This document shows positions 7,422 to 43,087 of a stretch of DNA of 64,000 bases, in pieces (the stretch's first letter is position 1; the number at the start of each line of letters is the position of its first letter). The DNA comes from Dendrobates tinctorius. Taxonomy: Eukaryota. Below the pieces are notes generated by a model. That model saw only the letters and a program-made list of their open reading frames with translations. It was not told the DNA's origin and made no database searches. The stretch is taken from assembly GCF_039654945.1 (NCBI RefSeq), contig NW_027361722.1:1426001-1490000 (forward strand). Reading direction: 5' to 3'. A program made the translations under genes and the position numbers.

Positions 7422-7944
7422 TATTAATAGCCAATAATGTCTATAAGACATCAGTCCTAGTGTTCGATTGGTCAGATGCGTATACACAGGGAATATCTCA
7501 TCTCATCAACCAGAGCTGATGGAAGATATATAAGGGCAGATTCAGAATCAGTGACGAAAACGGACGGAAAATCGGGTTCAAAATCTCCGGCACAATCTGC
7601 TTGTCCCAAGCGACTCAGTGTGCTCCCTCTAGTGGTGGCTGCTGGTAGTGACGACTTCTGCTGGGGTTTTGGATTATGGAGAATTGAACCAGTGCAGAAT
7701 TTTAGACCAGTTGTGTGAACCCGGCCTAAGCCGCCCCTCAGGCGAGTGCCCCCGTAGTGACACGTGGTGCTTTGCTGCACTACCCTTAGTTGTGTTATTA
7801 CGTACACTAGATAGTATAATCTATATGATATGGCGGGACTAATGGCGTCATATACAGTATATGTATGTGTAAGAGGGGAGCTGAATAAGTCATCACACCT
7901 CCTGCACTACAGGTGCCAGATGGGAGTAGCTCAGCCCTATGGAC

Positions 7945-8372
7945 GGCAGTCTCACCTTTGAGGTGGGCTGTTACACCTTATTGGGGGCCGTCTCACCTGG
8001 TTTGGGGGGCTGTCTCGTCTGATTATGGGTCTCACCTGGTTGGGTTCTGGCTCACCAGATTGGGGGCCGTCTCACCGGTTAGGGGCTGTCTCACTTGGTT
8101 GGGGGCCGTCTCATCTGACTGGAGGCCATCTCACCTGGTTGGGGGCCGTCTCACCGGTTGGTGGCTTGCTCACCTGGTTGGGGGCCGTCTCACCTGGTTG
8201 GGGGCCGTCGTCTCACCTGGTTGGGGTCTGGCTCACCTGGTTGGGGTCTGGCTCACCTGGTTGGGGTCTGGCTCACCTGGTTGGGGTCCATCTCACTGGT
8301 TGGGGGCTGTCTCACCTGGTTGGGGGCTGTCTCACCTGGTTGGGGGCCGTCTCACCTGGTTGGGGTCTGGCT
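7945..8372 (-). repeat. 20-bp minisatellite derived from the HGD exon 4 / intron 4 junction
   Basis: Minus-strand unit (CAGA/GGC)CCCCAACCAG|GTGAG(A/C) is the same as the exon 4 end GAGCCAGACCCCAACCAG|gtgagac; ~20 copies that decay away from the exon. Confidence 0.92.
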
Positions 8373-8461
8373 CCACTTCATCCCAGTTATGAGTCAGGTG
8401 TTTTTGCTCATAAGCCTGATAGGGTTTATGGCGGACAGACGGCAGAATACGGTAAAGCCAA
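8356..8461 (-). CDS. HGD: HGD coding exon 4 (106 nt)
   Basis: (S)[35 protein letters not shown]; cag acceptor, gtgaga donor. Confidence 0.96.
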
Positions 8462-8731
8462 CTGAAAAGGTAAAATATGATAACTCCCATCATCCGGACG
8501 AGCAGTTTTTACATAATGCATTAGTGATCGGGGGGGGGCAGCTTTACCAAGCAGGACTGTAGGAAAGATGGATGCCAGCCTTTGTGGGTCAACAGCCGCC
8601 ATGTTGGTTGTAACCCAAATTTCCCAGGGCCAGATATAAAAAAAGCAATGACTGAATAGAAGAGGCGATTCATAGTTATTGGGGTCTTACTCCTCTTAAA
8701 GGGGCAGTGCCCACTGGATTCCATTTCCTTA

Positions 8732-8860
<129 letters not shown>

Positions 8861-9034
8861 CTACCGCTCTGTTCTTGTTGTCAGTGAATAGGAACATTCA
8901 GTTCTATATCCTGCGAGGGGAAGGATCTGGGGCTGAAGACACAATTCCCATCACTGAGAGCAAGAAAAGAGCTTTCAAAATGAAAAGCTTCAGTAAGAAA
9001 TGACATCTGCCAGAGACGTAAATCAGCCGCTCAC

Positions 9035-9106
9035 CTGTCCCTCCGGTAAAGATCCCGGACAGCGAGGATCCTCCGAGGAGAATTCATTGCCAAATCCAGG
9101 CATATA
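9035..9106 (-). CDS. HGD: HGD coding exon 2 (72 nt)
   Basis: [24 protein letters not shown]; cag acceptor, gtgagc donor. Confidence 0.97.
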
Positions 9107-9215
9107 CTGAAAAGCAGAGAGAGAAAAGTTACACGTGAGACGGCAAATGCTCCAAATCCCTGAGACCTGTCACAAAGCCATAGCGCTATATAATGATATT
9201 CTGTCCGCCTGCAGG

Positions 9216-12200
9216 CACCACTAGAGGGAGCTCACTACATACAGATTTATACAGCCACCACTAGAGGGAGCTCTCTACATACAGATTTATACAGCCACCA
9301 CTAGAGGGAGCTCACTGCATACAGATTTATACAGTCACCACTAGAGGGAGCTCACTACATACATATTTATACAGTCACCACTAGAGGGAGCTCACTACAT
9401 ACAGATTTATACAGTCACCACTAGAGGGAGCTCACTACATACAGATTTATACAGTCACCACTAGAGGGAGCTCACTACATACAGATTTATACAGTCTCCA
9501 CTAGGGGGAGCTCACTACATACAGATTTATACAGCCACCACTAGAGGGAGCTCACTACATACAGATTTATACAGCCACAACTAGAGGGAGCTCACTGCAT
9601 ACAGATTTATACAGTCACCACTAGAGGGAGCTCACTACATACAGATTTATACAGCCACCACTAGAGGGAGCTCACTGCGTACAGATTTATACAGTCTCCA
9701 CTAGGGGGAGCTCACTACATACAGATTTATACAGTCACCACTAGGGGGAGCTCACTATATACAGATTTATACAGTCACCACTAGGGGGAGCTAACTATAT
9801 ACAGATTTATACAGTCACCACTAGGGGGAGCTCACTACATAAAGATTTATACAGTCTCCACTAGGGGAGCTCAGCACATACAGATTTATACAGTCTCCAC
9901 TAGGGGGAGCTCACTACATACAGATTTATATAGTCACCACTAGGGGGAGCTTACTACATACAGATTTATACAGCCACCACTAGAGGGAGCTCACTACGTA
10001 CAGATTTATACAGCCACCACTAGAGGGAGCTCACTGCGTACAGATTTATACAGTCTCCACTAGGGGGAGCTCACTACATACAGATTTATACAGTCACCAC
10101 TAGAGGGAGCTCACTACATACAGATTTATATAGTCACCACTAGGGGGAGCTTACTACATACAGATTTATACAGCCACCACTAGAGGGAGCTCACTACATA
10201 CAGATTTATACAGTCTCCACTAGGGGGAGCTCACTACATACAGATTTATATAGTCACCACTAGGGGGAGCTTACTACATACAGATTTATACAGCCACCAC
10301 TAGAGGGAGCTCACTACGTACAGATTTATACAGCCACCACTAGAGGGAGCTCACTGCATACAGATTTATACAGTCACCACTAGGGGGAGCTCACTACATA
10401 GATTTATACAGTCGCCACTAGAGGGAGCTCACTGCATACAGATTTATACAGTCACCACTAGAGGGAGCTCACTACATACAGATTTATACAGTCACCACTA
10501 AGGGAACCTCACTACATACAGATTTATACAGTCACCACTAGAGGGAGCTCACTACATACAGATTTATACAGTCATCACTAGGGGGAGCTCACTACATACA
10601 GACTTATACAGTCACCACTAGGGGGAGCTCACTATATACAGATTTATACAGTCTCCACTAGGGGGAGCTCACTACATACAGATTTATATAGTCACCACTA
10701 GAGGGAGCTCACTACATAGATTTATATAGTCACCACTAGGGGGAGCTCACTACATACAGATTTATACAGCCACGACTAGAGGGAGCTCACTACATACAGA
10801 TTTAAACAGTCACCACACGAGGGAGCTCACTACATACAGATTTATACAGCCACCACTAGAGGGAGCTCACTGCATACAGATTTATACAGTCACCACTAGA
10901 GGGAGCTCACTACATACAGATTTATACAGCCACCACAAGGGAGAGCTCACTACATACAGATTTATACATCCACCACTAGGGAGAGCTCACTACAGATTTA
11001 TACAGTCACCACTAGAGGGAGCTCACTACATACATATTTATACAGCCACCACTAGAGGGAGCTCACTACATACAGATTTATACAGCCACCACTAGAGGGA
11101 GCTCACTACATACAGATTTATACAGCCACCACTAGGGGGAGCTCACTACATACAGATTTATGCAGCCACCACTAGAGGGAGCTCTCTACATAGATTTATA
11201 CAGCCACCACTAGGGGAAGATCACTACATACAGATTTATACAGCCACCACTAGAGGGAGCGCTCTACATACAGATTTATACAGCCACCACTAGAGGGAGC
11301 GCTCTACATACAGATTTATACAGCCACCGCTAGAGGGAGCTCTCTACATACAGATTTATACTGCCACCACTAGTGGGAGCTCTCTACATACAGATTTATA
11401 CAGCCACCACTAGAGGGAGCTCACTACATACAGATTTATACATCCACCACTAGGGAGAGCTCACTACATACAGATTTATACAGTCACCACTAGAGGGAGC
11501 TCACTACATACATATTTATACAGCCACCACCAGAGGGAGCTCACTACATACAGATTTATACAGCCACCACTAGGGGGAGCTCACTACATACAGATTTATA
11601 CAGTCACCACTAGGGGGAACTCACTGCATACAGATTTATACAGCCACCTCTAGAGGGAGCTCACTATATACAGTTACACAGCCACCACTAGGGGGAGCTC
11701 ACGACATACAGAGTTATACAGCCATCACTAGGGGGAGCTCACTACATACATATTTATACAGCCACCACTAGGGGGAGCTCACTACATAAAGATTTATACA
11801 GCCACCTCTAGAGGGAGCTCACTACATAGAGTTATACAGCCACCACTAGGGGGAGCTCACTACATACAGATTTATGCAGCCACCACTAGAGGGAGCTCTC
11901 TACATACAGATTTATACAGCCACTAGGGGAAGATCACTACATACAGATTTATACAGCCACCACTAGGGGGAGCTCACTACATACAGATTTATACAGCCAC
12001 CACTAGAGGGAGCGCTCTACATACAGATTTATACAGCCACCTCTAGAGGGAGCACTCTACATACAGATTTATACAGCCACCGCTAGAGGGAGCTCTCTAC
12101 ATACAGATTTATACATCCACCACTAGGGAGAGCTCACTACATACAGATTTATACAGTCACCACTAGAGGGAGCTCACTACATACATATTTATACAGCCAC

Positions 12201-13262
12201 CACCAGAGGGAGCTCACTACATACAGATTTATACAGCCACCACTAGGGGGAGCTCACTACATACAGATTTATACAGTCACCACTAGGGGGAACTCACTGC
12301 ATACAGATTTATACAGCCACCTCTAGAGGGAGCTCACTATATACAGTTACACAGCCACCACTAGGGGGAGCTCACGACATACAGAGTTATACAGCCATCA
12401 CTAGGGGGAGCTCACTACATACATATTTATACAGCCACCACTAGGGGGAGCTCACTACATAAAGATTTATACAGCCACCTCTAGAGGGAGCTCACTACAT
12501 AGTTATACAGCCACCACTAGGGGGAGCTCACTACATACAGATTTATGCAGCCACCACTAGAGGGAGCTCTCTACATACAGATTTATACAGCCACCACTAG
12601 GGGAAGATCACTACATACAGATTTATACAGCCACCACTAGGGGGAGCTCACTACATACAGATTTATACAGCCACCACTAGAGGGAGCGCTCTACATACAG
12701 ATTTATACAGCCACCTCTAGAGGGAGCACGCTACATACAGATTTATACAGCCACCGCTAGAGGGAGCTCTCTACATACAGATTTATACTGCCACCACTAG
12801 GGGGAGGTCTCTACATACAGATTTATACAGCCACCAATAGAGGGAGCTCTCTACATACAGATTTATACAGCGACCACTAGAGGGAGCTCTCTACATACAG
12901 ATTTATACAGCCACCACTAGGGGAAGATCACTACATACAGATTTATACAGCCACCACTAGGGGGAGCTCACTACATACAGATTTATACAGCCACCACTAG
13001 GGGGAGCTCACTACATACAGATTTATACAGCCACCACTAGGGGGAGCTCACTACATACAGATTTATACAGCCACCACTAGGGGAGCTCACTACAGATTTA
13101 TACAGCCACCACTAGGGGAAGATCACTACATACAGATTTATACAGCCACCACTAGGGGAAGATCACTACATACAGATTTATACAGCCACCACTAGGGGGA
13201 GCTCACTACATACAGATTTATACAGCCACCACTAGGGGAGCTCACTACATACAGATTTATAC
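9216..13262 (+). repeat. 40-bp satellite (~100 copies), unit CACCACTAG(A/G)GGGAGCTCACTACATACAGATTTATACAG(C/T), containing a CTCF-like core
   Basis: Clear 40-bp periodicity; higher-order duplication of 673 bp within the array. Confidence 0.97.
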
Positions 13263-14967
13263 AACCAGGTCGCTGATTGCTGTCATGTGTCTGCTGCAGC
13301 CAATATCACTTAATTTATTAATGACCTTGGATAGCGGCAATGATGACAATGCTGGAACGGTGTCGTTGTGGGAGGTATTGATTGTTTTTACTGTAATTGG
13401 GGTCCTGAATTGATGAAGCCGGACGCCTTCTCGGTTCGGCATGTTGTCCTCCAGCTTCACAAATAAATCCCCCCATAGTAACCCATGAGGTGCTGGGTGC
13501 AGTGTCTGCCAGATAAAGCTGCTGAGTCACCATGTGTCAGGACCACCACATGTGGGAGAAGTTACTGAAACTGCAGGGAAGGGGGTACACGAAACTAGGA
13601 AAGGGGATAGAGATCAGGCAGGGGGCTTTGGATGTACACACGGGGTCTACACTGCAGGTTTACATCTACATGAGACACTTGCTATTCCAGATCCTGAGAT
13701 GTGGCTCATCCCCCAGGAATCCCAGAAACTGATAGTAGAAATGTCAGAGATTTCTGGACTGGCTGATAACAGGGAGCGATAGTTGCGTGCACCTGAGCTG
13801 TAAATGGAGAGAGTAGAAGCCGGTGATGCTTTTCTAGCTCGGGTCGTCCTGCATGCCCATTGGTGGTCCAACAGATCATGGAGTATCAGGTGGAGGGACA
13901 CTATAGCCACCCATTGCACTCGGTCTTTATGCTGCCGTTATTGTCCTGCCCCTTTAATAGTCCCGGGATGCCGCTTTCTCCACCATCCTTAGTGGCGGTG
14001 ACATTTGCCTCGCACACACTGGGGGGCTGGGAAATATTTAGCAGCGTCTTGCCCTCCCCCGGAGGTTCATCTGTTCTCCCCTGCAGTCGCACCCGTGTCC
14101 CCCACCCATGACCTTTCCACATTTCGCACCAATGAAGGGTCTGGAGCCTCGGGGTCCGCACCAACCCATTTCTTCATATAGGGCGGATGCTGGCGGGGGT
14201 CGCTCTCCTGGTGCGCGGTAATCCTGTCTATGTTTATGGAAGAAAGAAATGATGCAGAATAAACGCCGGTGCCAGCGGCAAGAGGCACAAAGAGCCGGTA
14301 GATGGCGGCGCGCCCGCGGCAAATGGTCTAGTATAGTACTGTGGACGGACGGAGCGGAGTCAGGAATGCTCGGTGTAGCCGTGGTACGTCATCTCAGAGG
14401 TCTCCTCTCGCTGCTCTTCCTCCCCTCTCACAGCAGCCAGTCTCAGGGACACGCTGGAGACATTTACTAAACGATTTGCTGGAGCAGAATAAAGTTGCAC
14501 ATTTTGTTGCAGAGACGAGACGCATCCACTCCACCCCACGGCGTACGGGCTCACACCCCACGGCGTACAGGCTCACAGGCCCAGTTATTCATCAGGAAAT
14601 TGCAGACTGAACCTTTATTAACCCCTTAACTTCTTTCCTTGACCCACTGGGTGGAGCTTAGTTATCACATGCCAACTGGTGACACTGGGCCACACATCTC
14701 CTGGTTTGGGAATAGATGTCAGCAGAACAGTCAGGAGCCGCGGGATGAGGAAAACTCTGGAATACGACCCTGACTGTGGGCGGCGGCGGCAGACGATCCA
14801 GCACCGATGCTCCATATAAACCCGGCCCTCATACAGTAGGAAGTATTGGTGCTCAAGTAGGGGATCCAGCCCGCCTTACTGGTGACTGATCGATGCACAC
14901 CGCTACTTACAGTCATTGATGCGGACCCATGAATCTCAGAGCACCTTGAATCCATTTGTAGCACTGT

Positions 14968-14970
<3 letters not shown>

Positions 14971-15023
<53 letters not shown>
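14971..15023. repeat. (TA)n(CA)n microsatellite
   Basis: Direct inspection. Confidence 0.95.
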
Positions 15024-15024
<1 letters not shown>

Positions 15025-15806
15025 GTAAGGCCTTTTATCAGGCCCTCCCTTACTACACTATCTGTGGGGTTACACTCATTTCTTTTGCACCCGATTTCTG
15101 TGGTAAATGCTTCTGACATTGATCTGATCTTTTATTCTGGATTGCTTTGTATATTAAAATATAATTGGCATTTTGTTCTTTCCTCTGGATCTTATACTCC
15201 GTTCTGGGAGAAATCCAGGGCTAGTGCCTATGACGGTCCGGATATATGGGCTTGGGACTGTTCCTTATATTAGGGTTTCTGTCTTGGTGATATTATATTA
15301 CTATATCAAGGTGAGCATTATATCAGAGTATTATATCGGGGTAATCATTATATGGGGGTGAGCACTGTATAGCATTATTACATCATCGCACCCCGAGCTC
15401 TGCGATCGGCTGCACCTCCTTGCAATGACCCATTTATCCTCCTGCCAGCGGTGATGGGGTTAATGGTGACAGGAAGTGCCTGGAGTCTGAACTGTCCATG
15501 TAGTGGAACATCTGGGCAGATGTCACAGCGCCGGCTGTGATTGGCTGAGCCGGGAACACCCCTGCCCCATCCACAGACGCCCACAGCAGGAGGCAGCAAA
15601 GGTCACAGCGAGAGGACTGCAGGGGAACTACAACTCTCAGCAGCCCCAACAGCTGCAGCTAACTCTACAGCTTTTCTCAGCTGTTGTGAAACTACAACTC
15701 CCAGCATTTGTACAGAACTGTATTTACAATTCCTGGCTATGAGGATAAAGCGTCCCCCAAAGATGTGGTCTGACCAATGGGTGTAAAGAAACTCTGTGTT
15801 GTCACT

Positions 15807-15958
15807 GGTGTTACATAGGACTGCAGGTGACATCTTCCACATTATCTGAGCTGTTACACAGGACTGCAGGTGACATCTACTACGTTATCTGTGGTGCTAC
15901 ACAGGACTGCAGGTGACATCTACTACTTTATCTGTGGTGTTACATAGGACTGCAGGTA
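15807..15958. repeat. Short ~43-bp tandem repeat (GTTACATAGGACTGCAGGTGACATCTACTAC..)
   Basis: About 4 copies of AGGACTGCAGGT. Confidence 0.8.
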
Positions 15959-16179
15959 TCTGTAGTTGGAGTTCTCGCTTCTGTTGTCAGTCCCGATACT
16001 ACAGAGGTGGACAATCATCACGCTTGTAAATATAAGCGCCTCACAGACCCAACGTCACCGTATAACATCCATAGTGCACATATAATACTGCCGCCACCAG
16101 GTTCCTGGGAATGTAGTAAACCTGTGATTGGTCGGAGTAAAGAACCTCCCGCACATTGCAACAAACCCTGACCTGCGAG

Positions 16180-17750
16180 CAGTGGCGGATTAAGTGGACT
16201 ATGGGCCCGGGGCTGTTCATAAAACCTGGGCCCCTGTACCCCCCTTCCCACCTGAGCGCTGCGGTCCCCGTGCGGGAATTGACAGCCGTACGGACCGCAG
16301 CACTTGGTTTGCTGCGGGTCCATACGGAAAACCCGCCACCATTCCACCATGTGAAGCCCCCACTCATCCCCCCTTCATCCTGTGAAGCCCCCACTCACCC
16401 CCTTCATCCTGTACAACTCCAGTCACCCCCCGTCATCATATACAGCCCCCAGTCACCCCCCGTCATCATATACAGCCCCCAGTCACCCCCCCGTCATCAT
16501 ATACAGCCCCCAGTCACCCCCCTTCAGCATATACAGCCCCCAGTCACCCCCCTTCAGCATATACAGCCCCCAGTCACCCCCCTTCAGCATATACAGCCCC
16601 CAGTCACCCCCCCGTCATCATATACAGCCCCCAGTCACCCCCCTTCATCATATACAGGCCCCAATCACCCCCCTTCATCATATACAGGCCCCAGTCACCC
16701 CCCTTCATCATATACAGCCCCCAGTCACCCCCCTTCATCATATACAGCCCCAGTCACCCCCCTTCATCATATACAGGCCCCAGTCACCCCCCTTCATCAT
16801 ATACAGGCCCCAGTCACCCCTCCGTCATCATATACAGCCCCAGTCACCCCCCTTCATCATATACATCCCCCAGTCACCCCCCTTCATCATATACAGGCCC
16901 AGTCACCCCCCTTCATCATATACAGCCCCCAGTCACCCCCCGTCATCATATACAGGCCCCAGTCACCCCTCCGTCATCATATACAGCCCCAGTCACCCCC
17001 CTTCATCATATACAGCCCCCAGTCACCCCCCCGTCATCATATACAGCCCCCAGTCACCCCCCTTCAGCATATACAGGCCCCAGTCACCCCCCCTTCAGCA
17101 TATACAGGCCCCAGTCACCCCCCCTTCAGCATATACAGGCCCCAGTCACCCCCCCTTCATCATATACAGGCCCCAGTCACCCCCCCTTCATCATATACAG
17201 GCCCCAGTCACCCCCCTTCATCATATACAGCCCCCAGTCACCCCCCTTCATCATATACAGCCCCCAGTCACCCCCCGTCATCATATACAGGCCCCAGTCA
17301 CTCCCCCTTCATTGTGTACAGCCCCCACTCACCCCCTCCCCCATTTAATTCATTTTATAAATAAAAAAAAATAAAAAAAGTTCCCCATACTTACCTCACA
17401 GCCGGCTCGCTCCCCAGCAGCGCCTCTGCTTTCAGCATCCTCCGGGACATGTCATCACGCACGCCCGACATCTGACCCGGAAGTACAGCCGGAGGGAGCC
17501 GGAGCTGAGCAGCCGTCAAGGTGACGGCCGTGCACAGCTCCTGGCCCCTCATAGAATGTGACGCGGGCGGCTGTCTGCTGCCGGCGGCGTCACAGGCAGC
17601 ACAGGGCACGGCCGGCCCTGTACAGGTGCTGGGGGAGCGGTCCGGGGGGCATTTGCCTCTCTGCCACCCGGCCCAGCCCGCCCCTGCGCCCCCAAAAAAC
17701 CTTGGGCCCGGGGCGACCGCCCCATCCGCCCCTATTAGGATCCGCCATTG
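16180..17750. mobile_element. Non-autonomous hAT element with an internal minisatellite
   Basis: TIRs CAGTGGCGGAT / ATCCGCCATTG; perfect 8-bp TSD CCTGCGAG (16172-16179 and 17751-17758). Confidence 0.9.
16420..17335. repeat. ~30-bp C-rich minisatellite (CAGTCACCCCCCTTCATCATATACAGCCCC)
   Basis: Direct inspection; produces the spurious 402-aa and 330-aa ORFs. Confidence 0.95.
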
Positions 17751-18014
17751 CCTGCGAGGAGTACGACCTATGCACAGATTTCAGCCTCTGGCTATAAATA
17801 GCAATGATCCCGGACCGGACACTGACAGTAAGCAGAGATCCAGAATTTGGGCAAAACAAACATTTTTTGGGGGAAGTTGCAGAACTACTGACATTAATGA
17901 TGAAGCGTCATGTACATATGACAAAACCAGGCTGTAACTCTGCACATCCGTCACACGCAGCCTGCAATGCACTTCTATGTGGACGCAGAACATCGCACCA
18001 AACGAATCACACTC

Positions 18015-21000: not shown

Positions 21001-21810
21001 ACCTGTATCCGCCACGTATCAGTCCATAGCACACCTGTATCCGCCACATATCAGTCCATAGCACACCTGTATCCGCCGCGTATCAGTCCGTATCACACCT
21101 GTATCCGCCGTGTATCAGTCCATATCACACATGTATCCGCCGCGTATCCGTCCATATCACAAATGCATCCGCCGCGTATCCGCATCCGCCGCGTATCCGT
21201 CCATATCACAAATGCATCCGCCGCGTATCTATCCATCCATAGCACTCATGTATCCGCCGTGTATCAGTCCATATCACACATGTATCCGCCGCGTATCCGT
21301 CCATATCACAAATGCATCCGCCGCGTATCTATCCATCCATAGCACTCATGTATCCACCGTGTATCAGTCCATATCACACACATCGCTCATGTATCCGCCG
21401 CGTATCAGTCCATATCACACACATATCGCTCATGTATCCGCCGCGTATCAGTCCATAGCACACATGTATCCGCCACGTATCAGTCCATAGCACACATGTA
21501 TCCGCCGCGTATCAGTCCATAGCACACATGTATCGCTCGTATATCAGTCCATATCACACACATATAGCTCATGTATCCGCCGTGTATCAGTCCATATCAC
21601 ACGTATCCGCCGCGTATCAGTCCGTATTACACATGTATCCGCCGTGTATCAGTCCATATCACACATGTATCCGCCGCGTATCCGTCCATATCACAAATGC
21701 ATCCGCCGCGTATCCATCCATCCATAGCACACATGTATCCACCGTGTATCAGTCCATATCACACACGTATCGCTCATGTATCCGCCGTGTATCCGTCCAT
21801 ATCACACACG
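18015..21810. repeat. 31/32-bp CpG-containing satellite (GTATCAGTCCATAGCACACATGTATCCGCCGC), ~3.8 kb
   Basis: Direct inspection; two main variants (CCGCCGC versus CGCTCGT/CGCTCAT). Confidence 0.97.
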
Positions 21811-21989
21811 AATTGTCAAATATATCAGGAGTTTGTGTCAGTTTAAACTCAACCTCCAATATAACGGACCCGTAGCAGATTGTGTCTCCCGGTGACAGTA
21901 AGAACGGCGGCTCGTTATCGATGATCGCTAGGATACATTCCCTTCCTTCCCAGCTCCAGGCTCCACTTTTCGGCCGGCTCAGGACTTAC

Positions 21990-22004
21990 CTTGAGCTCTG
22001 CCAT
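21990..22004 (-). CDS. HGD: HGD coding exon 1 (15 nt, MAELK)
   Basis: ATG GCA GAG CTC AAG|gtaagt; same N-terminus and exon size as human HGD. Confidence 0.93.
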
Positions 22005-22365
22005 GTCCAGGTCCCTGTTCCTCCGCTCTGTGCTGCAGATTTCTGCTCTGCCAAGATTAAACACGCAGCTCAATGTGGATTTGATTAAACACAGGCCGGT
22101 TGCACAATTCTGCAGTGTGACTGGTGGAGGGGGAGGGATGGACCGCTCGGGTCACTGACAACAGAACGCAACATTACAGGTGTCTTCTCTTACAAGGACT
22201 CCGACCTCCCACCGTCCACCGCTGAGCACCAGGTCCGCACATCACACGGAGAAACCTTCATTTACTTGTGTACGTGTGTACAGTCAGAGCTGTAATCACA
22301 ATTCTACTGTTATCCCATGGCTCAAACATCAGTTCCCTCCAGAGCTGCATTCATGGTTCTTATTA

Positions 22366-24758: not shown

Positions 24759-24877
24759 TAGATGCCATGTTGGAACATATGCAATTGTCAGCATGCATCA
24801 TGAATTATTTTATACTTTTGGACAATGCACAGTAAAAGTTATGTGTCCCATAATGTTCCACAGCTAAGGACTGAATA

Positions 24878-25045
24878 TATACAGATTTATACAGCCACCA
24901 CTAGGGGGAGCTCACTACATACAGATTTATACAGCCACCACTAGGGGGAGCTCACTACATACAGATTTATACATCCACCACTAGAGGGAGCTCACTACAT
25001 GCAGATTTATACAGCCACCACTAGGGGGAGCCCACTGCATACATA
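24878..25045 (+). repeat. Short array (~4 units) of the 40-bp CTCF-like satellite
   Basis: Same unit as 9216-13262. Confidence 0.92.
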
Positions 25046-25197
25046 TATGTATGGACATGTGCTGGACATTTGTTTATCTGACTACAACATTTATTGGGTC
25101 CTGCTGTCTCAACTTAGTTTGATTGATTAACGAGAAGAGAGAGCAATAAAAAAAAAAAAGAAAAAAAAAAAAGGAGATCTAAGCCTTAGCCTCCTAT

Positions 25198-25513
25198 ATC
25201 ATAGAATCATAGAATCGTAGAGTTGGAAGGGACCTCCTGGGCCATCTGGTCCAACCCCCTGCTCAAAGCAGGATTCGCTAAATCATCCCAGTTAGATGTC
25301 TGTCCAGCCTCTGTTTGAAGACTTCCATTGAAGGAGAACTCACCACTTCTCGTGGCAGCCTGTTCCACTCATTGATCACTCTAACTGTCAAAAAGTTTTT
25401 TCTAATATCTAATCTGTGTCTCCTCCCATTCAGCTTCATCCCATTGCTTCTAGTCTTTCCTTGTGCAAATGAGAATAAGGAGGTCCCTTCCAACTCTACG
25501 ATTCTATGATTCT
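25198..25513 (-). mobile_element. CR1 LINE 3' fragment capped by an inverted copy of its own 3' end
   Basis: Minus-strand ..TRSNGMKL..RKNFLTVRVINEWNRLPREVVSSPSMEVFKQRLDRHL with an (ATTCTATG)n tail; 25479-25513 is the reverse complement of the tail end. Confidence 0.88.
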
Positions 25514-25519
25514 TAAGTC

Positions 25520-30902: not shown

Positions 30903-30964
30903 ATATACAGCCACCACTAGAGGGAGCTCACTACATACAGATTTATACAGTCAGCACTAGGAGC
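30903..30964 (+). repeat. ~1.5 units of the 40-bp CTCF-like satellite at the 5' junction of Tx1 element 1
   Basis: ATACAGCCACCACTAGAGGGAGCTCACTACATACAGATTTATACAGTC. Confidence 0.9.
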
Positions 30965-32849
30965 CTGTAGTCTGTGGAGGAAGGTGTGCTGGTGTGTTTG
31001 CTCCAGGAGAGTCCGTTTTTTTTTTTTTGTTTTTTTTTTTTTTACACCCAGGAATCTCTACCCCCCCCCCCCCCCCCCGACCCAAAAAAGAGAGGGGTGT
31101 AGTGTAAGAGCTGTGTCCCCATCTCCCACCTATTGGTCTAAGCCGGTGAGGGGTGGGAGCTCATTGCTACCGGCAAACAGGGTCACCAGATCCGGCAAGG
31201 CCCGAAACATGGAGGAGCCCAGGAAGACCCAGGAGGGCTGCAAAGCCCCTAAGGCTGAGGCGAGGGCCACTGCGGTGCCTCCTCCCGGAGGTGAGCTGAG
31301 TTCTCGCAGAGGTGCAGCGGCGGCGGTGCAGAAGGATTGAGGCACTAGGGCCGCACGGGAGCTGGTTACCAGCTATGGCTCCAACATCCTTGCGTACCTC
31401 TGCGAGTATGAGGAGGCTGGGAAGACCCTGAGGAGGCTCCAGGAGGAGATGAAGGAGGCAAGGCAGGCTGCAGACAGAGCCTCCCGCACAGAGAAGTCTT
31501 CCCTAACAGCCAGGATATCCAGCCTGGGGATCTGCATTGAGGGCATTGAAGCCCGGAGAGCGGCCATATTGGACAACATCGGGCCTTTTTGGGAAAAATT
31601 GGAAGATGAGGACCGATTCCACAACATGGCTGCTGAAAAGGAGCCAGAGAGGTCTCAGCGTCTGACCCAGGTGGAGGAGGTGGACCATGTGGAGATGGAG
31701 GAGGCACCGTAACCACCTGGGAGCTTGGTAAGTGATCTCCAGGCCACACACAGTGGGATAGATCCAGTGCAGGTCCCACTCCCATCAGACAATAGTATTT
31801 CAGAGGATGATGGGGGTGATGCGGATGATAGCAGCAGCGATACCAGCAGTAGTGAGGGTTGCCTCGTCCTGCAGCAGATCCATCAGCTAGAGTCCCCAGT
31901 AAATTATGCCCACCTGAAATTTGGGATGTCTGCGGGGACGAGGCAACCAGGAGGGGGAAAAAGAAACGGAAAAAAGGAAAACATCGGAGGAGAGGTTGGT
32001 GTTTGTCCCCTTTCCTGGGACCCCCCGGTCCCGCTGTGTGGAGCCCGCTACCCACCCCGGCCCGGGACCTGCAGTGGGTCCAGTGCGAGGAAGCGGGGAG
32101 AGTACAAATCACGTGGTGCAGGTCGCCGTCTCTGCTGACGGTAGCAGAGGGGGCGAGAGTGGGCAAGCGGCTGCCGAGCCGGACAGTCTGCATGGTCTGG
32201 AGTGTGGCCCTGTGGCGGGCGGAAGTAACACCTGTGGAGGTGTCCAGGCCCGATCCTCGGTGAAAACAGGGGACAGCCTGGCGCCTGCTCCACCCGCTGA
32301 CGCTCGGGAGGTGGAGACTGTGGGTACCTTGCCGGTGGTCGCCGCTCCCCGCAGTGTTCGCGGTGGGCTAGCGGCGTGTGCAGTGGTGTCGGGGCCCCCC
32401 ACATGTAGATCCGATAATGGGTCAAAGCCAGGGACCCCGGCACCGGTTATCTCGGATGTAGCTGTAATGGCTGCGGTAATGCCGGCCCGGACTGTCGCGC
32501 CACTGGGGTCCTCTGCATGTGTGTCACCTGTATCTGCGGGGGACCCAGCAGTGAAATGCACACAGGAGCGTGGAGATGGTCTGCAGGAGAGGCTGGAGCA
32601 ATAGTCTGCAGCTGCCAGCACATGCACTGCTGGAAAGCAGGGTGTGGTAATTAAACCCTGCAGTATCATTCTTAAAGGGGCAGCTGCACTGCAAATAGCA
32701 ACCCCCCCAGCAGAAAGCAGTGTAAAAAACACAAATGTAAATAAGAATGGAAGTGGTGTGAATAGTGTCTGTGACAATGGTGAAGGGTCAGGTGCTGGAG
32801 GGGCGGATTCTGCTGGAGGTATGGTTGGTGCGAATTCTGCAAAAAAAAA

Positions 32850-35706
32850 ACAGGGGAAGAGTCTTGAGGAGATCATTTGCATATTCCCAGTGCCTTCTGG
32901 GATAAGTGAAGAGTCTCCGCGAGCTCAACGATCACTGGGTTTTGGCCGTTGCAGCTGAAAAGAGGAAATCGGAAAACCAGGGGAAGAGTCTTGAGGAGAT
33001 CATTTGCATATTCCCAGTGCCTTCTGGGATAAGTGAAGAGTCTCCGCGAGCTCAACGATCACTGGGTTTTGGCCGTTGCAGCTGAAAAGAGGAAAATGTA
33101 AAAACCGCGCGCCGACAGGCTCGCGAAATTTGGCTCATCTTTCATCGTTTTTAAGAAATCTCAAGATGGAAGAGGCCAGGAGCCATTTGGTGAGCTGCAT
33201 TTCTTGCTACATGTTCACAGATTTACCAGTGGAAAAACCAAACTTCACATGCCACAAATGCAGCTTGTGTCCCTGTTGGAGGAAAAGTTGCAAAATCTCG
33301 AAGAGAGGTTAGCTACGTTGAAGATCATTAAGGAAGGTGAAGAGTTCTTGGACAGAGCAGAATTATCTCTTCATGTTACAGAAAGAGAAGAAATTCGAAG
33401 TGCACCTGAAGAAACAGAGGAATGGAGACATGTGACCCAGAGAAGCAGGAGGATCAGGAGGCAGTCAGCACCCATACTGCTCAGAAACCAGTACCAGGCT
33501 CTCACGCAGGAAAACGATGAAGAAATACATCAGGATAAGACTTTGCCAACAAGCAGCAACCTTGTACGCCCTCAGAGTCCTCCTGGATGGAGAAAGAAAA
33601 ATGTTGTGAAGAAGAAACGGAGAGTGGTGGTCATGGGGGATTCCCTGCTGAGAGGAACAGAGGCCGCTATCTGCAGACCGGATATAACTTCAAGAGAAAT
33701 GTGCTGTCTTCCAGGTGCAAAAATTAAAGATGTGTCTGACAGGATATCAGGACTCTTCAGACCTACAGATGACCACCCATTCCTGCTACTACATGTGGGG
33801 ACAAATGACACCGCAAGAAACGACCTGGAAACCATCTGCAGAGACTTTGAAGACTTAGGCAAGAAAGTGAAAGAACTGGGAGCGCAGGTGGTCTTCTCTT
33901 CCATCCTCCCAGTGGATGGCCATGGAACAAGGAGGTGGAATAAGATTCTGCAGGTGAACAACTGGCTACGTCGATGGTGCCGTCAGCAACGATTTGGATT
34001 TCTGGATCACGGAGTGAACTACTTATACGATGGACTACTTGCTAGAGATGGGGTGCACCTTACGAAGACTGGAAAGCATGTATTTGGAAGTCGCCTTGCT
34101 ACACTTGTAAGGAGAGCTTTAAACTAGAACAACATGGGAAGGGAAGCAAAAGACCAGAAAAAGCCATACACCTGACAAATGCTATTGAGAACTCTGCTAT
34201 TAGAAGTGGAAAGGAAGAACAAAGACGAAAGAATCTAATAAATAAAAATATTGGAGAAAGAGAAACCAATCACAAACTAAAATGTTTCTATACTAATGCA
34301 CAAAGCATGGGCAACAAACAAGGAGAATTGGAACTACTAACACAGGAACAGAAATATGATGTCATTGGAATCACTGAAACTTGGTGGGACAATACACATG
34401 ATTGGAATACAAGACTAGAAGGATACAACTTATTTGCAAGAAACAGACTTGATAAACGAGGAGGGGGTGTCGCATTGTATGTTAGAAACGCGTATATCTG
34501 CACAGAGATTGAAGCTTCAGAGACTGGGAGTTCTGTGGAAACTGTTTGGGTAAGAATACAAGGACAGAACAATGGAAAGGACACCATTGTAGGCATTTAC
34601 TACAGGCCGCCTGTGCAAGCCGAAGATATAGATGAACTCTTTATGCATCAGATGGCCAAGTTCTCCAAAAAATATGACATAGTTGTCATGGGAGATTTCA
34701 ACTATCCAGACATTTGTTGGGAATCTCTCTCAGGCAAAACTAACAGGTCAAGGAAATTCTTATCCTCTCTTGCTGACAACTTTATCTTCCAAAAGGTAAG
34801 GGAGAAAACAAGGGGAACTGCTACCTTGGATCTAATCCTTATAAACAGGGAGGAAATGGTTGAGGAGGTAAAAGTGGCTGGGACCCTAGGAGGTAGCGAC
34901 CATGCTATTTTAGAATTTTGGATTACTAGAGGTGGAAGACCTGTGAAGACTCAGACGTCAAGGTTAGATTTCAGAAAGGCAGATTTTAAGGGATTCAGAA
35001 AGAGAATTGGAGGGATCCAATGGCTGGATATCCTTAAAGACAAAAATGTCCAGGAAGGATGGGAAATCTTGAAAAATGAAATTCTCAAAGCACAGTTGTT
35101 AACAATTCCGAAAAGAGGGAAGAATAGGAAGCATTTAAGGAAACCAGGATGGATGAACACAGAACTTAAGCACATGCTAAAAAGGAAGAAAAAAAATGTT
35201 TATAAAATGGAAAGAGGGAGGCATATCTAAAGAAGAATATAATGCTGTCTGCAGAACCTGCAGGGCACAAATCAGATTAGCTAAAGCTGAAAATGAACTG
35301 AGGCTTGCAAGAGATGTCAAAAGCAATAATAAAGGATTTTGGGGATATGTCAAAAGTAAAAGAAAAGTCAAAGATGCTATAGGATTTTTACAGGATGAAA
35401 ATGATGAAATGGTAAGACAGGATGTTGAGAAGGCTGAACTTTTAAATTCCTATTTTGCATCTGTTTTCTCTCAGAAAGGAAATGCAACATCAACTGTTAT
35501 TCACTGTCCTATTAAGGGAATAGAAGAATCCAGGATATCTATAAACAGAAAGATAGTGAGGAAACACTTAGCTAACCTAAATGAATTCAAGTCTCCAGGT
35601 CCAGATGAATTACACCCCAGAGTACTGAAGGAGATAGCAGAAGAAATTTTTGAACCCCTCTCCATAATCTTTGAAAATTCTTGGAGAACAGGAGAAGTGC
35701 CAGAAA
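32850..35706 (+). mobile_element. CR1 LINE with intact 5' end, 3'-truncated; ORF1 esterase plus APE endonuclease
   Basis: ORF1 has CxxC..CxxC, coiled coil and SGNH motifs GDSLL/HVGTND/DGVHL (to 34127). ORF2 has YTNAQS..GITETWW..YRPP..MGDFNYPDICW..GSDH and ends at SWRTGEVPE, before the RT core. Confidence 0.92.
32851..33095 (+). repeat. Two 127-bp tandem monomers in the CR1 5' UTR
   Basis: CAGGGGAAGAGTCTTGAGGAGATCATTTGCATATTCCCAGTGCCTTCTGGGA.. starts at 32851 and again at 32978. Confidence 0.92.
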
Positions 35707-37018
35707 TGAAAATGCTAGTGAAAATGGTGAGGCTGAGGTCAGTGAGGTGGAGATGGTTGACTGAGGTTGAGGGTTCAGGGAATTTAGGGGCTGGTCCATC
35801 GCCCCCCTCACCTGCAGGCACCATTAGTTATGCGGCTGCTGCCGGTGGGATTCTGCGAGGGTCTTCCTCATCTCTGGACCCAGGGAATAATGCTTTTTGC
35901 AGTTTCCTGGAGGCCCTCAAAAAAAGGGGAGCAGACAATCAATGTAGAGGGAAGAGAGGTGGAGTTGTCCTACTGCCTAGATAAGTTTGGTCTACCTGTC
36001 TTCCAAGAGAAAAGGGGGGGGGGGGGCGGGACTGTGTGGTCCCTCCCGACAGCCGGGCAGGAGGTCTCCAGGAGAAATGTGGTTCGTCTTCACTGGAGGG
36101 GCGATGTCCATCCAGGACAAATGTGGTGAAGCTCCTCATGAAGATGGACTTCAGGGCTATTGATATCTTTGCTCTGATACATCCTTTTGGGACCTCCACC
36201 TTTGATATCAGCTTTGTTCGGCCGGAGGGCTTGGAGCTCTTTTGGTCGAATTATGAGCTGGTAAAAGAGGAGCCCGGCTGGCGAGGGTTTGCCAAAGTGG
36301 GCCGAAGAAAGTGACCGTTTTAATGTGTAATGAGTCAGGACGAACCAGGACGATTTTGGCATCTGGTCAGGAGGCTGGACCTTCATGGTAAAGTTGAAGC
36401 GTTCAGGGGGCACTGTCACCCACATCCCTTCCTCGGCTTTCCTGGGAAGGGATTGTATTCTGGTCTTCTACCAGGGGCAGCCGAAGGTCTGCCACAGGTG
36501 CGGTGATCCTCACCACTTCTGCACGGGCTGCAAGGTGCAGAAATGAGGCTTGTGTGGCGGGGTAGGCCATCTTGCCGCGTCCTGTGGTGTCATTCGATGT
36601 CACCTGTGTGGTAATCTAAGTCACCCGTTCAGCAGCTACCCCCGTTCCTTCTCTAATGCCATGGCTAGCCGGGCAGAGGGGAGCCGCGAGGCGGTTCTTG
36701 GCAATGCAACTTCTGCATCCGTTGGAGGTGGCAGCGGGAAAGGAGCTGAGGGGCAGATGAGGAATGGCAGGGCTAGGGGCCCCTATTACCAGCGGAGGCA
36801 GGAAGAGCCTCAGGAAACTGGGGTAATAGCTGCCCCCTCTTCCGAGGCGACGGCCCATGTCACTGAGGCCCTGGGGGAGGAAGCAGTGAATGAGGATATC
36901 AGACGGATGGAGAATGAGGAGGTGGCTGATCTCTCAGATGCCTCCCAATATTAAAGTTTTGATGAGGATGGAGGGGGAACAGCCAAAAGAAATGGGTGAC
37001 AAGGGTACCAAGAGTGAC

Positions 37019-37058
<40 letters not shown>

Positions 37059-40000
37059 GAAGGGAGGTGGAAAAATCTTCTCCCTCCCTGACCAAGGTGC
37101 CTAAGGAAGGTCCCACTGACTCCCCCCTCTGATCCCCCTCTCCACCAGTTCCAAGTCCTTGACGCCCCTGCTGAGACGGTGGTCAGGGGTGAGGTTCCGG
37201 AGGTAATATTGGGAGGGTCTTTGGAAGGGGGCGGAGTCCCTTCTCCAGAGGCGTGTCTTCCTTGGGAGGTGGATTTTATCACCCAACTTGAGGCTGAAGT
37301 TTTGCTGTTGCAGGAGACCAGACTTACGGATATGGGGGCCATATGTAAGGCGGAGAGCAAGTGGAGGTGCGGGTCCTCATACTGGTCTCTTGCGGCCGAG
37401 CTGTGTAGCGGGGCGGCAGTCCTTTTTAAGACTGCATCGGTTGAATGCCGGAGAGTTATCTAGGTAGAAATGGGGAGGTGCCTGGTCTTAGACGTCTTCA
37501 TGAGGGGACAGGAGCTTCGGCTCATTAACATCTATGGTCCACAGTCAAAGTGGGACTGTAAATGTCCCTTCCTGAAGATTAAGCCCTATCTTTTTACGAG
37601 CCGGCAGGTGGTCTTTGGAGGTGACTTTAATACTGTCACAAGGCTTCGTGATAAGGGGAGGCTCCAATGACCGGCTGGCTTATGATAATACTACTCTTAA
37701 TAGCATAGCTAGTGACGCTCGCCTGGTGGATGTCCACATCCGGCACACCCCAGGTCACAGTGGTTTCACCTTTCATAGAGGTAGTTTCAGGTCTAGGATA
37801 GACAGGTTTTTTTTTTTGAAGGAGGAAGCCATCTCTTCAGCAGTGTCCGTTGTGGAGGTGGAGTACTCCGATCACTGTCTGATTTCTGTTTCAGAAACCA
37901 CTCGGATGGGAAAGGGACTATGGAAGCTGAATTTGTCCCTCTTGGAAGAAGCAGAGATAAGACAATCCTTTGAGGACATTCTTCAGAGCCAGGTACCGCT
38001 TTTGGATCTCTGTAGCGATAAGACAGAGTGGAGGGAGATGTTCAAGGAACGGGTTGAGAGTTTCTTCCGCCAGCTCTCGAGCCTCAGGAGCCTGAGCAGG
38101 TACCGCCTGTATCAGGAACTGAGGAGGAAACTTGAACAGCTCGTCTCGACTGGGGTGACCGTGAGGAAATCTCCAGAGGAAAGTCTTTACTTAAGAGGTG
38201 TCAGTACGATAGGCACACATCTTTGGTTTTTGAGAGGTATTTCGGGAGGTACCGCTCGCCCGACCCCTACAGAAACTGTAAGATGTCAGTGAGTTGTAAG
38301 GTGGTGACAGGTTTGGTCGACACTACGGGGTCCCTGAATAGATCCAAATCAGGGATCCTGGAGGTGACCAGATCTTTCTACTCACACCTTTTGGGGAAGA
38401 GGGATCTGGATCAGAACGCGATGTTGGCTTTCCTGGCCGAAGCCATCCCTGAGCCAGGGGGATGTCCTCTCGCTTCACGTTTTGACAGAGGCAATGAGGG
38501 AAGAGGAAGTGCGACTGGCCATTGATGGGATTCAGCCTAAGAAATCGCCAGGTCCGGATGGCTTATCATCCGAGTTTTATAAGACCTTCAGGGACTCCTT
38601 GGTCCCCCTCTTGACTGAGGTGTTTAACGAGTGTCTCTCCTCGGGCACTCTTTCCCGGTCAATGAGGCAGTCAGCCCTGATTATCCTGTCAAAGGGTAAG
38701 GACTCGTCCCGTATTGAGCATTGGCGTCCCATAGCGCTTCTCAATATGGACCGGAAGGTTCTAGCAAAGGTGCTGTTCAAACGGCTGAAGTTGGGACCCA
38801 GCATTGCTCTGTTCCAGGCCGCAGCACTTTTAGTGCTGTGCTCGATGTCCGGGAGGCAGTGGAGCAGGGTAGGACTGGTCACTGGAAGGGGTATTTGCTG
38901 TCTTTAGACCAGGCGAAGGCTTTTGAACAGGTGAATCAACTTCTGGTCCGTCCTTCTGAAGTACGGTCTGCCTGGGAGGGGGGGGGGTGGTTTGTGAATT
39001 GGCTAAAACATCTTGTATGTGGGGGCAGAGACCTTCCCGCTCGTGAATGGTTGGTCTGGCCTCCCTTTTGAGGTTGGGTCTGGGGTCCGCCAGGGCTGTC
39101 CGTTGAGCCCACTGTTATACGTGTTCGCGATAGATACCCTTTTAAGGAGGATTGAGCGCGGGCCGTTGGCGGGAGTCAGGATGGACCAGGCGGCCCCAGA
39201 AGCCACTCTGAGGGTGGTAGCGTATCCCTATGACGTCTCCCTTTTCGTGTCCTTGGGTGTGGAGGCGGAGTGGGTCATGTCTGAGGTTGGTCGCTACTCG
39301 GAGGCTTTTGGGTCCAGAATCAGGAAAAGTGTGAGAGTCTCTGGCTGGGAGGGGGAGACCCTAGTTTTGCTCTCCCGGACACCCTTCCAGAGACCCAGGC
39401 ATCGTCAAAAATTCTAGGCATCAAATTTGGACCGGGGGACTACCCCCAGCAAAATTGGGAGAGCAGACTTAAGATCGCCACCCAGAAGGTGGACCAATGG
39501 AAGGGTTGGTCTTTGACCCTGAGGGAAAGGGTTAGCCTGGTCAAGGGTTTTTTTGCTACCCTTGTTAATATACCTAGGCAGTGTCTGTATGTTGCCAGAG
39601 CCGCTCTTGACACGGGTCTACAACCTGTTTTCCCAGATGTTATGGGGAAATAGGCTAAACCTAGTCAAGCGAGAGGTCACATATCGCACAAGGAGACTAG
39701 GAGGGTTGGGTATGGTCAACCCAGTGGTTTTTCTAGTAAACACTTTTGTCAAGACTAACATCGCCAACCTCTGGTCAGAGAGGGCTCCTCCATGGGTATT
39801 CTCCTGCAGGGGAAGGCTTCGGCCCTTCTTCCAGGAATGGGACACAGGAGGGCAAGTGAAGGACCTATGCACAACGCATGGACATCTCCCGGCTTACGCT
39901 ACCCCGGTTCTGAAGGTAATCCGGTGGGGTCTGGGAATGTGGGAGATAAGGACCATGTCGAGGAGGGTCCTGCTGACCCATTTCTAGAAGCCTCTGGTGC

Positions 40001-41365
40001 TCAAATATTGCCCAAGTTGGGATCTGGAGGGCAGGCTGAGGTTATTGAATTCTACACGGGTCCCCTTGAAGTTTTGGGACTTGGCGCTGCTTCCATGGGA
40101 AACTGTATGTAAGGGACAACCTGAAGTGTTGGAACGCCGAAGATCGGGGTTGTCCCAGTGAGGAGTGTTGCGACACGCTGGAAAGCATGGAGCACTTCCT
40201 CCTTCAGTGTCCTTTTAATACAGGGGTCTACAACAGGGTGGGTGCTTCCATTGGCTGGCACACCTTTCCTATGCGCAGTGGGCGTATGGGGCATTCAGAT
40301 CCCTGGGTGGCCGAGATCGGGGCACTTTATTTCTAGTCAGTTTAGTCGTCAGGTTTTACATGTGGAATGCACGGTGCTTAATATAAATTCAGCAGAAAAT
40401 CCTCCCTAGGGACGAGGTTGTTAGGAGCATTCTGGGTGCCCTGGTGAAGGTGCGCTCTCTGGAGTATGACAGGCTGGGTGCAGCGAGGGCCTCTCTGCTC
40501 TGGAGAGGGTTCTCATTTAATGTACCCTAGGGCTTAGATAAGCAGGTAAGTGGGACAGGTAGATGTCTTCAGTAGGGACAGGTAGATAGGGGCAGGACAG
40601 GGACAGCCGAGGGACAGTTAGGCAGGCACGTGGTGAGTTAGGTAGGGCAGTAGGGGCAGGCAGGGAGAGACAGGGAAAGGTAGGTAGATAAATAGAGGCA
40701 GATGTCTAGACAGGTAGGGACGGCTGGTAGAGTAAGGATTGTTAGGATAGAAGCCGGTCATCTCCGGTTTCCTGGTGGCGGGCTGGCGGCTTTTCACTAT
40801 CAGATTTTTGTTTTGCAGAAGTGAAATACTATGCATGTGTCTTGTAATTTTATCTCTTGTATATGTTAAGAGACTACATTTCATTCTAAAAACTCCTGTG
40901 GTTCTCTGGCTCTCTAATATTTCACAGTGGAGTGGTTAAATGCACATATAGGGTGTGTGTATACCCGGTGTTAATGTTACGATGAATCTGGTATTGGTTG
41001 TACTAATTGGTGTGAAGTGTGTATGTGCACGTGTATTAAAAAAATGTTTCTTCTCTCCTCGGGTGAGGTAACCTGGGGAGGAGGAGATCTGGAGAAATCA
41101 AAAGTCAAAAGTGAAAAAACGAGTGAAGGACACAAAACAGCATAAGAGAGAAAGATGAAGGAGGAAGCTTCTCTGAGAGAGAAGACAGAGTTTGATTCTT
41201 GTTTGGTTTTTTTTTTGGGGGGGGGGGTTGCTTTGGCTGGGGGCAGTTATGCTGGACTCGGACTTTGCTTTGGACTGGGGGGTAATGTTGGACTCGGACG
41301 GTTGCTTTCGCTGGGGTTTTGATTTTTTGCTATTTATTGATTGTAAGCTTTGTATTCTTATAAAT

Positions 41366-42470
41366 GAGTTCACTACAGACAGATTTATACACCCATCACC
41401 TGGGGAAGCTCACTACATACACAACATATACAGATGGCACTAGGGGGAGCTCACTATATACAGATTTATACATCCACCACTAGAGGGAGCTCACTACATA
41501 CAGATTTATACAGCCACCACCAGAGGGAGCTCACTACATACAGATTTATACAGCCACCACCAGAGGGAGCTCACTACAGACAGATTTATACACCCATCAC
41601 CTGGGGAAGCTCACTACATACACAACATATACAGATGGCACTAGGGGGAGCTCACTACATACAGATTTATACATCCACCACTAGGGGGGACTCACTACAT
41701 ACAGATTTATACAGCCACCACCAGAGGGAGCTCACTACATGCAGATTTATACAGATGCCACTAGGGGGAACTCACTACATACAGATGCCACTAGGGGGAG
41801 CTCACTACATACAGCCGCCACTAGAGGGAGCTCACTACATACAGATTTATACAGCCACCACTAGAGGAAGCTCACTACATACAGATTTATACAGCCACCA
41901 CCAGAGGGAGCTCACTACAGACAGATTTATACACCCATCACCTGGGGAAGCTCACTACATACACAACATATACAGATGGCACTAGGGGGAGCTCACTACA
42001 TACAGATTTATACATCCACCACTAGAGGGAGCTCACTACATACAGATTTATACAGCCACCACCAGAGGGAGCTCACTACATACAGATTTATACAGCCACC
42101 ACCAGAGGGAGCTCACTACATACAGATTTATACAGCCACCACCAGAGGGAGCTCACTACAGACAGATTTATACACCCATCACCTGGGGAAGCTCACTACA
42201 TACACAACATATACAGATGGCACTAGGGGGAGCTCACTACATACAGATTTATACATCCACCACTAGAGGGAGCTCACTACATACAGATTTATACAGATGC
42301 CACTAGGGGGAACTCACTACATACAGATGCCACTAGGGGGAGCTCACTACATACAGCCGCCACTAGAGGGAGCTCACTACATACAGATTTATACAGCCGC
42401 CACTAGAGGGAGCTCACTACATACAGATTTATACAGCCGCCGCTAGGCGGAGATCACTACATACAGACTT
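41366..42470 (+). repeat. Array of the 40-bp CTCF-like satellite with variant units
   Basis: Same core unit, plus a recurring CACCCATCACCTGGGGAAGCTC..CACAACATATACAGATGGCAC variant. Confidence 0.95.
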
Positions 42471-43087
42471 ATGTACAATGAGAATGTCACATGCAGACAT
42501 GGCTGACCTGAGTTGCCACTGGAGGTTATTCTGCTACTTTGGCAGTGCCATCTATGCTTATCATTGCCCTACAAGTCACCATCCAGATGTCAGAGTCTGG
42601 GGCTGAAAAAATCCTGAACATCCACAGATGTTGGAAACAAAGTAAACAGGACACTGGGGGTGTTAGCATCAGGCGGCTGCTGTGAAAGCGTCATGTAATT
42701 GTAGGATTCACAGATGACGGAGTAATCACCAACATAAAGGAGTTAATGCCCATCTCTATGTGGGAACTTCTGGCAATAAAGGAGCAGGGATCCACTATTC
42801 ACAAGGCAATCGCCCTGGTTTATGGCCCCGTACATACGCGCTGCCACAGTCCAGTTCTGTAAGATTATAAGACATACGGTAGATAATCCTGTCCGGCAAA
42901 ACTTTACTAGTCCCGAGGTCCTGGACGGACCCTGCAGTCTCATTTTTTACTTGTATAACAATGGACCAGTGACATCAACCTGTTCATTACAAGAAGGCAG
43001 TGACGAGGCGCCACTGATGCGCTCACGTGGCTGATCCATGGGACGTGGATATCGTTTATGTCCCTATTGGTCCTTCGAGTCAGCTCC

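Follow-up and report, generated by a model that had tools for sequence, protein, structure and literature searches.

A tandem 40-bp satellite of co-oriented CTCF-like motifs in the HGD region of the frog Dendrobates tinctorius

Tandem repeats with a CTCF site in each unit are known from the human macrosatellites DXZ4, D4Z4, ICCE and FIRRE and from mouse Dxz4, whose copy number is variable and whose binding depends on chromatin (PMC3491370, PMC6125249). The human gamma-satellite, the ribosomal DNA (rDNA) spacer and some alpha-satellite are also enriched in CTCF motifs; the gamma-satellite was proposed to be a barrier, and DiMeLo-seq signal was observed in rDNA and gamma-satellite (bioRxiv 10.64898/2026.07.18.739380). 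In rodents, the CTCF motif was multiplied within the lineage by SINE B2, and a minority of copies are reported as bound and the rest as repressed (PMC3368268, PMC9067402, PMC10982698). In frogs (Xenopus tropicalis and others), the minisatellites of extended subtelomeres have units of <100 bp, derive partly from pieces of mobile elements, lie in repeat-dense regions and are rich in the words AGGG and ACAG (PMC10794172). Here we describe a satellite with a 40-bp unit, the main array of which lies in an intron of the homogentisate dioxygenase gene (HGD) of Dendrobates tinctorius and consists of units resembling the CTCF core. The window, i.e. the whole stretch of DNA that was analyzed, comprises 64,000 nucleotides (NCBI RefSeq assembly GCF_039654945.1, contig NW_027361722.1, positions 1,426,001 to 1,490,000 of the forward strand), and all coordinates below are positions within it.

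When the frog satellite was compared with these systems, it was found to share with the DXZ4-type macrosatellites a tandem array with a CTCF or CTCF-like site in nearly every unit. However, the macrosatellites have units of 3-5 kb, are GC- and CpG-rich, and bind CTCF as demonstrated by chromatin immunoprecipitation (ChIP), whereas the frog satellite has a 40-bp unit (25 putative sites/kb) with a CpG-free consensus. In place of the kilobase unit at one or a few loci that characterizes the DXZ4 type, we observed a dispersed and abundant family. The motif-rich human satellites contain at most ~1,200 sites/Mb and are centromeric or acrocentric, in contrast to the frog array with ~25,000 putative sites/Mb in an intronic, euchromatin-like setting. 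The likeness to SINE B2 lies in a motif-bearing sequence of very high copy number that is common to related species. SINE B2, however, occurs as single copies dispersed by retrotransposition, whereas the frog satellite is tandem and block-duplicated, and no transposon hallmarks were found around its arrays. In the case of the frog subtelomeric minisatellites, CTCF motifs were not reported in the units (PMC10794172), and the likeness is one of short units, repeat density and words: a single AGGG and two copies of ACAG occur in the 40-bp unit, which lacks TGGG, and this together with the tandem-repeat content of the window (24.5 %) agrees with the published description of that class (PMC10794172).

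The general properties of a satellite (head-to-tail units, higher-order structure and many loci) were all observed, with three loci in the window and thousands of contigs elsewhere. Satellites with CTCF sites and transposon-borne CTCF motifs are already known; what appears to set the present family apart is the combination of a 40-bp unit, a putative site in nearly each unit, the lack of CpG, the dispersal in genes and the occurrence across species. No description of a 40-bp CTCF-like satellite or of its sequence was found in the literature, and neither CTCF nor a 40-bp unit is mentioned in the searchable text of the frog satellite papers, including those on Rana temporaria and the satellitome studies.

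Tandem Repeats Finder (TRF) placed the main array at 9212-13267 (period 40, 102.2 copies, 91 % matches, 1 % indels, score 6409), essentially the bounds given in an earlier note on this DNA (9216-13262). When the array was cut into units by wrap-around alignment to the consensus CAGCCACCACTAGAGGGAGCTCACTACATACAGATTTATA, 49 distinct types were counted among the 102 full units. The description of ~100 tandem, co-oriented sites in the earlier note was borne out, as motif matches within the array were found on the + strand only. Its statement that every unit has CCACTAG(A/G)GGGAGCTC was overstated, since the exact string is present in 58 of the 102 units and a relaxed core in 71. The variant units CCACCAGAGGGAGC reported there do occur, at 11521, at 12194 and many more times in the array at 41366-42472. 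The consensus unit indeed lacks CpG, even across the unit junction, and the whole main array contains 18 CpG as opposed to 201 expected from base composition. The array is non-coding, with a TAG in each unit on the + strand and several stops on the minus strand. No known RNA family was matched in an Rfam search of 8000-26000, and the fold of four units (a z-score of only -1.9) did not support a structured transcript.

The units were then scored with a position weight matrix (PWM) for CTCF, entered by hand after the counts of JASPAR MA0139.1. The consensus unit reached 18.1 of 26.1 bits at unit positions 4-22 (p ~4e-7). Thresholds of p<1e-4, 1e-5 and 1e-6 were passed by 97, 85 and 66 of the 102 units, respectively, and by none on the minus strand, so that the resemblance to CTCF sites put forward in the earlier note held up in the scan. 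For ten further tandem repeats of the same window, the consensus did not exceed 4.6 bits, and among 20,000 shuffles of the unit none reached 16.8 bits and 0.01 % reached 12.95; a chance resemblance to the CTCF core was ruled out by these two comparisons. The single A at a usually-C position of the motif is, as had been supposed, the second commonest base there (104 of 909 in the matrix). The match of the unit to the vertebrate CTCF core is strong, beyond chance and in one orientation throughout, and its sequence would allow CTCF to bind. In Xenopus tropicalis, the standard vertebrate CTCF motif is found in convergent orientation at domain borders, and CTCF/Rad21 ChIP tracks them (bioRxiv 10.1101/2020.04.02.021378), so the motif should apply to frogs. 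Because the motif lacks CpG, DNA methylation cannot directly block binding. The upstream CTCF module (TGCAGT-type) is represented by a weak likeness at most (ACAGAT, by inspection). A REST/NRSE-like reading of CAGCCACC...GGGAGC was also considered and was discarded due to mismatches in both half-sites, as judged by eye.

The abundance of the family was analyzed with contigs of four sequencing runs aligned to 13143-14500, a region composed of 125 bases of satellite (approximately three units) and 1.2 kb of flank. The satellite part was covered by 225 contigs in run X12 (organism A; peak summed depth ~14,000), 3,111 in X7 (organism B; ~386,000), 3,841 in X13 (organism C; ~700,000) and 501 in X18 (organism D; ~160,000). 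In X7, the unique flank had a depth of 5.9 and was ~95 % identical, which makes organism B a close relative. Judged from the summed depths, the unit exceeds single-copy DNA in abundance by four to five orders of magnitude. In each of the four runs, unit positions 4, 14, 23, 26 and 27 showed polymorphism at a level of at least 10 %, and the variants are thus older than these species. Public metagenome contigs gave zero matches to the satellite. In the flank, the stretch 14385-14476 showed raised depth in all four runs (up to ~486 in X13) and represents another repeat common to these species.

The contigs also carried sequence beyond the unit. A consensus ...AAATTCTGTCTGCCTG precedes the unit in 72 contigs of X7 and 85 of X13, and its only match in the window is nearly the same string, ATTCTGTCCGCCTGCAG, at the left edge of the main array. 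In other contigs, ...ACATACAGA is followed by GATACATGATAAGATCCTGTCTGCC, from which the sequence returns to the motif. The shared upstream flank and the longer continuations indicate that the 40-bp unit belongs to a wider family, consisting of longer units or of a parent element.

In the 3' half of the main array, the distance between units shows a sharp drop for pairs that are 17 units apart. Two adjacent 17-unit blocks are 99.1 % identical to each other (Table 1), as opposed to ~88 % in any other register, and this points to recent unequal exchange. Motif-damaging variants were copied along (GGGGAAGATC in five to six copies, CCTCTAG in six and GGGAGAG in four). The rate of variants was 0.031 per position per unit at the eight high-information positions of the motif, 0.032 at the 21 positions outside the motif and 0.104 at the low-information positions of the motif; the last of these reflects old polymorphisms at two positions, 4 (C/T) and 14 (A/G). 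Across the four runs, none of the five common polymorphisms fell at a high-information position (P ~0.3). The sparing of the motif relative to the AT-rich half, which the earlier note had proposed to look for, was therefore not seen (0.031 vs 0.032), in a comparison that concerted evolution makes weak either way.

Table 1 Features of the window (strand as given; positions from the first letter of the window)
Feature	Position	Strand	Evidence and remarks
Solo copy of GC-rich motif-bearing half, 24/25 bases	7617..7641	-	Lacks AT-rich half; surrounding intronic sequence is unique
HGD coding exon, equivalent to human exon 2	9035..9106	-	phmmer vs PDB 1ey2, E=1.4e-8; 24 residues encoded
Left edge of main array	9198..9214	+	Resembles sequence preceding unit in many contigs of other organisms
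Main satellite array	9212..13267	+	TRF, unit segmentation, PWM scan; 102 units x 40 bp, CTCF-like core at unit positions 4-22
Higher-order block 1, 17 units	11441..12113	+	99.1 % identical to block 2
Higher-order block 2, 17 units, recent block duplication	12114..12787	+	99.1 % identical to block 1
Second small array, same satellite, 4 units	24879..25043	+	TRF, PWM
Left part of third array, 1.3 units	30903..30955	+	Junction sequence, PWM
Decayed retrotransposon without long terminal repeats (non-LTR), ~10.4 kb	30956..41365	+	Junctions; AP endonuclease and GDSL-type ORF1 (open reading frame 1) domains, broken frames
Right part of third array, ~28 units	41366..42472	+	TRF; more diverged, 161-341 bp higher-order periods

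We give a guarded preference to the reading that this is an abundant frog satellite family, selfish or neutral and driven by recombination, which is CTCF-capable by sequence and mostly unoccupied. The great abundance of the family under four organism labels argues for selfish or neutral amplification rather than for a locus-specific device. The 40-bp satellite is common to several related frog genomes, and the present array is one local instance that grows and shrinks via unequal exchange or slippage of whole blocks. The family would have expanded for selfish or neutral reasons and not for a need of a boundary at the HGD locus. Some units may bind CTCF where chromatin permits, and the array could then form a barrier, effective from one side, against cohesin loop extrusion within HGD intron 1. 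The majority of the units are probably unoccupied or in silent chromatin, like most mouse SINE B2 copies and the motif-bearing human alpha-satellite. For some binding of CTCF to the units in some tissue, we would put the chance at close to even or a little under. Full occupancy is unlikely at a pitch of 40 bp because the footprint of CTCF is ~40-50 bp.

Several points weigh against this preferred reading. The contig depths were summed and do not give copy numbers, and the scores depend on a matrix that was entered by hand rather than supplied by a tool, although its column sums (908-914) are self-consistent. A parent mobile element was not found, the flanks of the three arrays being unrelated, and inverted terminal repeats were not found across 8900-13800; on the same grounds, carriage of the array by a common transposon appears less likely, although the 5' flank common to many contigs and the solo copy at 7617-7641 would be in keeping with it. 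In addition, the two commonest variants in the motif (at positions 4 and 14) are tolerated by the matrix, and the types of substitution tend to be cheaper for the matrix than random ones with an equal mix of transitions and transversions (P=0.054). This is at most a weak hint that the common variants are tolerated ones, and weak selection for binding may have acted.

The same tolerated variants would also fit a different explanation, in which the array is a selected CTCF/cohesin platform, tunable by copy number and insensitive to methylation, that insulates HGD and its promoter from neighbors such as RABL3. A strong, co-oriented motif in 85-97 of the 102 units and a consensus without CpG would be expected of such a platform, the same-orientation arrays at 24879-25043 and 30903/41366-42472 lie beyond the expected promoter region, and tandem clusters of CTCF sites are reported to be stronger insulators than single sites (PMC7087399, PMC7200164). 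However, the informative positions of the motif are conserved no better than the remaining unit, and block duplication produced five to six copies of damaging variants such as GGGGAAGATC and CCTCTAG. The numbers of units under the four organism labels also far exceed any need for boundaries, the insertion of a retrotransposon was tolerated in a unit of the third array, and the simultaneous occupancy of all units is hardly possible at their spacing. We consider a selected platform improbable. A CTCF/cohesin platform had been the central proposal of the earlier note; its sequence part stood (18.1 bits, co-orientation, CpG-free consensus), and the part concerning an insulator tuned for this locus found no support, as the motif is not spared and the family is very abundant.

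The CTCF likeness may also be without consequence, either because the satellite is inert and silenced or because a different zinc-finger protein, such as a repressor directed against a parent element, recognizes its GC-rich half, with no CTCF bound in vivo. The absence of any sign of constraint on the motif suits this explanation, and so do a copy number typical of silenced repeats and the A at a position where 81 % of known sites have C. Human alpha-satellite higher-order repeats, which are enriched in the motif and yet show no DiMeLo-seq signal, offer a parallel (bioRxiv 10.64898/2026.07.18.739380). It is opposed by the score of 18.1 bits, which lies within the range of bound sites, by the presence of A at that position in ~11 % of the matrix sites, and by the CpG-free motif, which methylation does not directly block. 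The mouse beta-globin element HS5, a known CTCF-binding site, is a further point in opposition. A literature search by core strings returned only an otherwise unrelated mouse probe, that of HS5, which shares the 13-mer CACCACTAGAGGG with the unit (PMC3950710). A likeness without consequence is regarded as rather unlikely, but as the most serious competitor of the unoccupied, CTCF-capable satellite that we prefer.

Either outcome would be of interest. If CTCF binds, the family would provide natural arrays of ~100 same-direction sites at a 40-bp pitch many times per genome, and hence a natural counterpart of the synthetic multi-site insulators with which barrier strength is probed against site number and orientation. 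It would also mean that CTCF sites can spread as tandem satellites instead of singly with transposons. If CTCF leaves the units unbound, the genome would tolerate motifs of perfect appearance in the tens of thousands, a case relevant to the poor prediction of occupancy from motif strength.

The third array comprises ~29 units in all and is split by the 10.4-kb insertion of the retrotransposon; the satellite arrays of the window are all on the + strand. The insertion point of the retrotransposon, between CACTAGG and GAGTTCAC, falls within the motif of a single unit, ~2 bases of which were lost, and such elements may land preferentially in the satellite. This insertion exactly inside a motif is consistent with a further explanation, according to which the motif half persists by serving the spread of the repeat itself, as a hotspot of recombination or breakage that seeds amplification or as a landing site for retrotransposons, with the CTCF likeness as cause (through breakage at bound sites) or coincidence. 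Frog minisatellites track recombination and the AGGG/ACAG words (PMC10794172), which would agree with it. On the other hand, there is one such insertion among the ~135 units of the window, and we regard this explanation as the least probable of those considered. A bolder version is that, in this frog lineage, CTCF sites themselves are the seeds of tandem amplification. Bound sites would break or stall replication and duplicate in place, giving rise to a class of co-oriented CTCF-site minisatellites which would be occupied and act as very strong one-sided barriers to loop extrusion, varying with copy number. To this we assign a small probability, slightly below that of the selected platform.

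In the case of the HGD gene, a polypyrimidine tract and an AG lie before the exon at 9035-9106, and its translation matches the residues of human homogentisate dioxygenase that closely follow the start (PDB 1ey2). The main array begins 105 bp upstream of this exon, on the acceptor side, in accordance with the placement in intron 1 made in the earlier note. HGD exon 1 and the promoter were not located. The solo copy CAGCCACCACTAGAGGGAGCACACT at 7617-7641 is preceded by CCAGCAG, and the edge of the array by CCTGCAG; the solo copy may be a relic of the parent sequence.

Stand-alone strong matches to the CTCF matrix (13.5-20.9 bits) were also observed at 26243, 26306 and 55403 on the minus strand and at 14292 and 30608 on the plus strand. 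They are unrelated to the satellite, and those at 26243 and 26306 sit in a 63-bp repeat. The minus-strand matches face the + strand arrays and could be their loop partners, as predicted from motif orientation.

Centered on CTAG, the GC-rich half of the unit (unit positions 3-22) forms a partial palindrome, AGCCACCACTAGAGGGAGCT, in which symmetry extends to 14 of the 20 bases, and the unit variant AGCCACCTCTAGAGGGAGCT holds the perfect palindromic 10-mer CCTCTAGAGG. The partial palindrome was judged not to be significant and is possibly of chance origin.

Tandem repeats of at least 11 unrelated families make up the 24.5 % of the window mentioned above. They include repeats at 16355-17336 (30 bp), 18026-21771 (32 bp, CpG-rich), 44572-46361 (167/420 bp) and 62600-63402 (31 bp), and their density resembles that of the extended subtelomeres of frogs.

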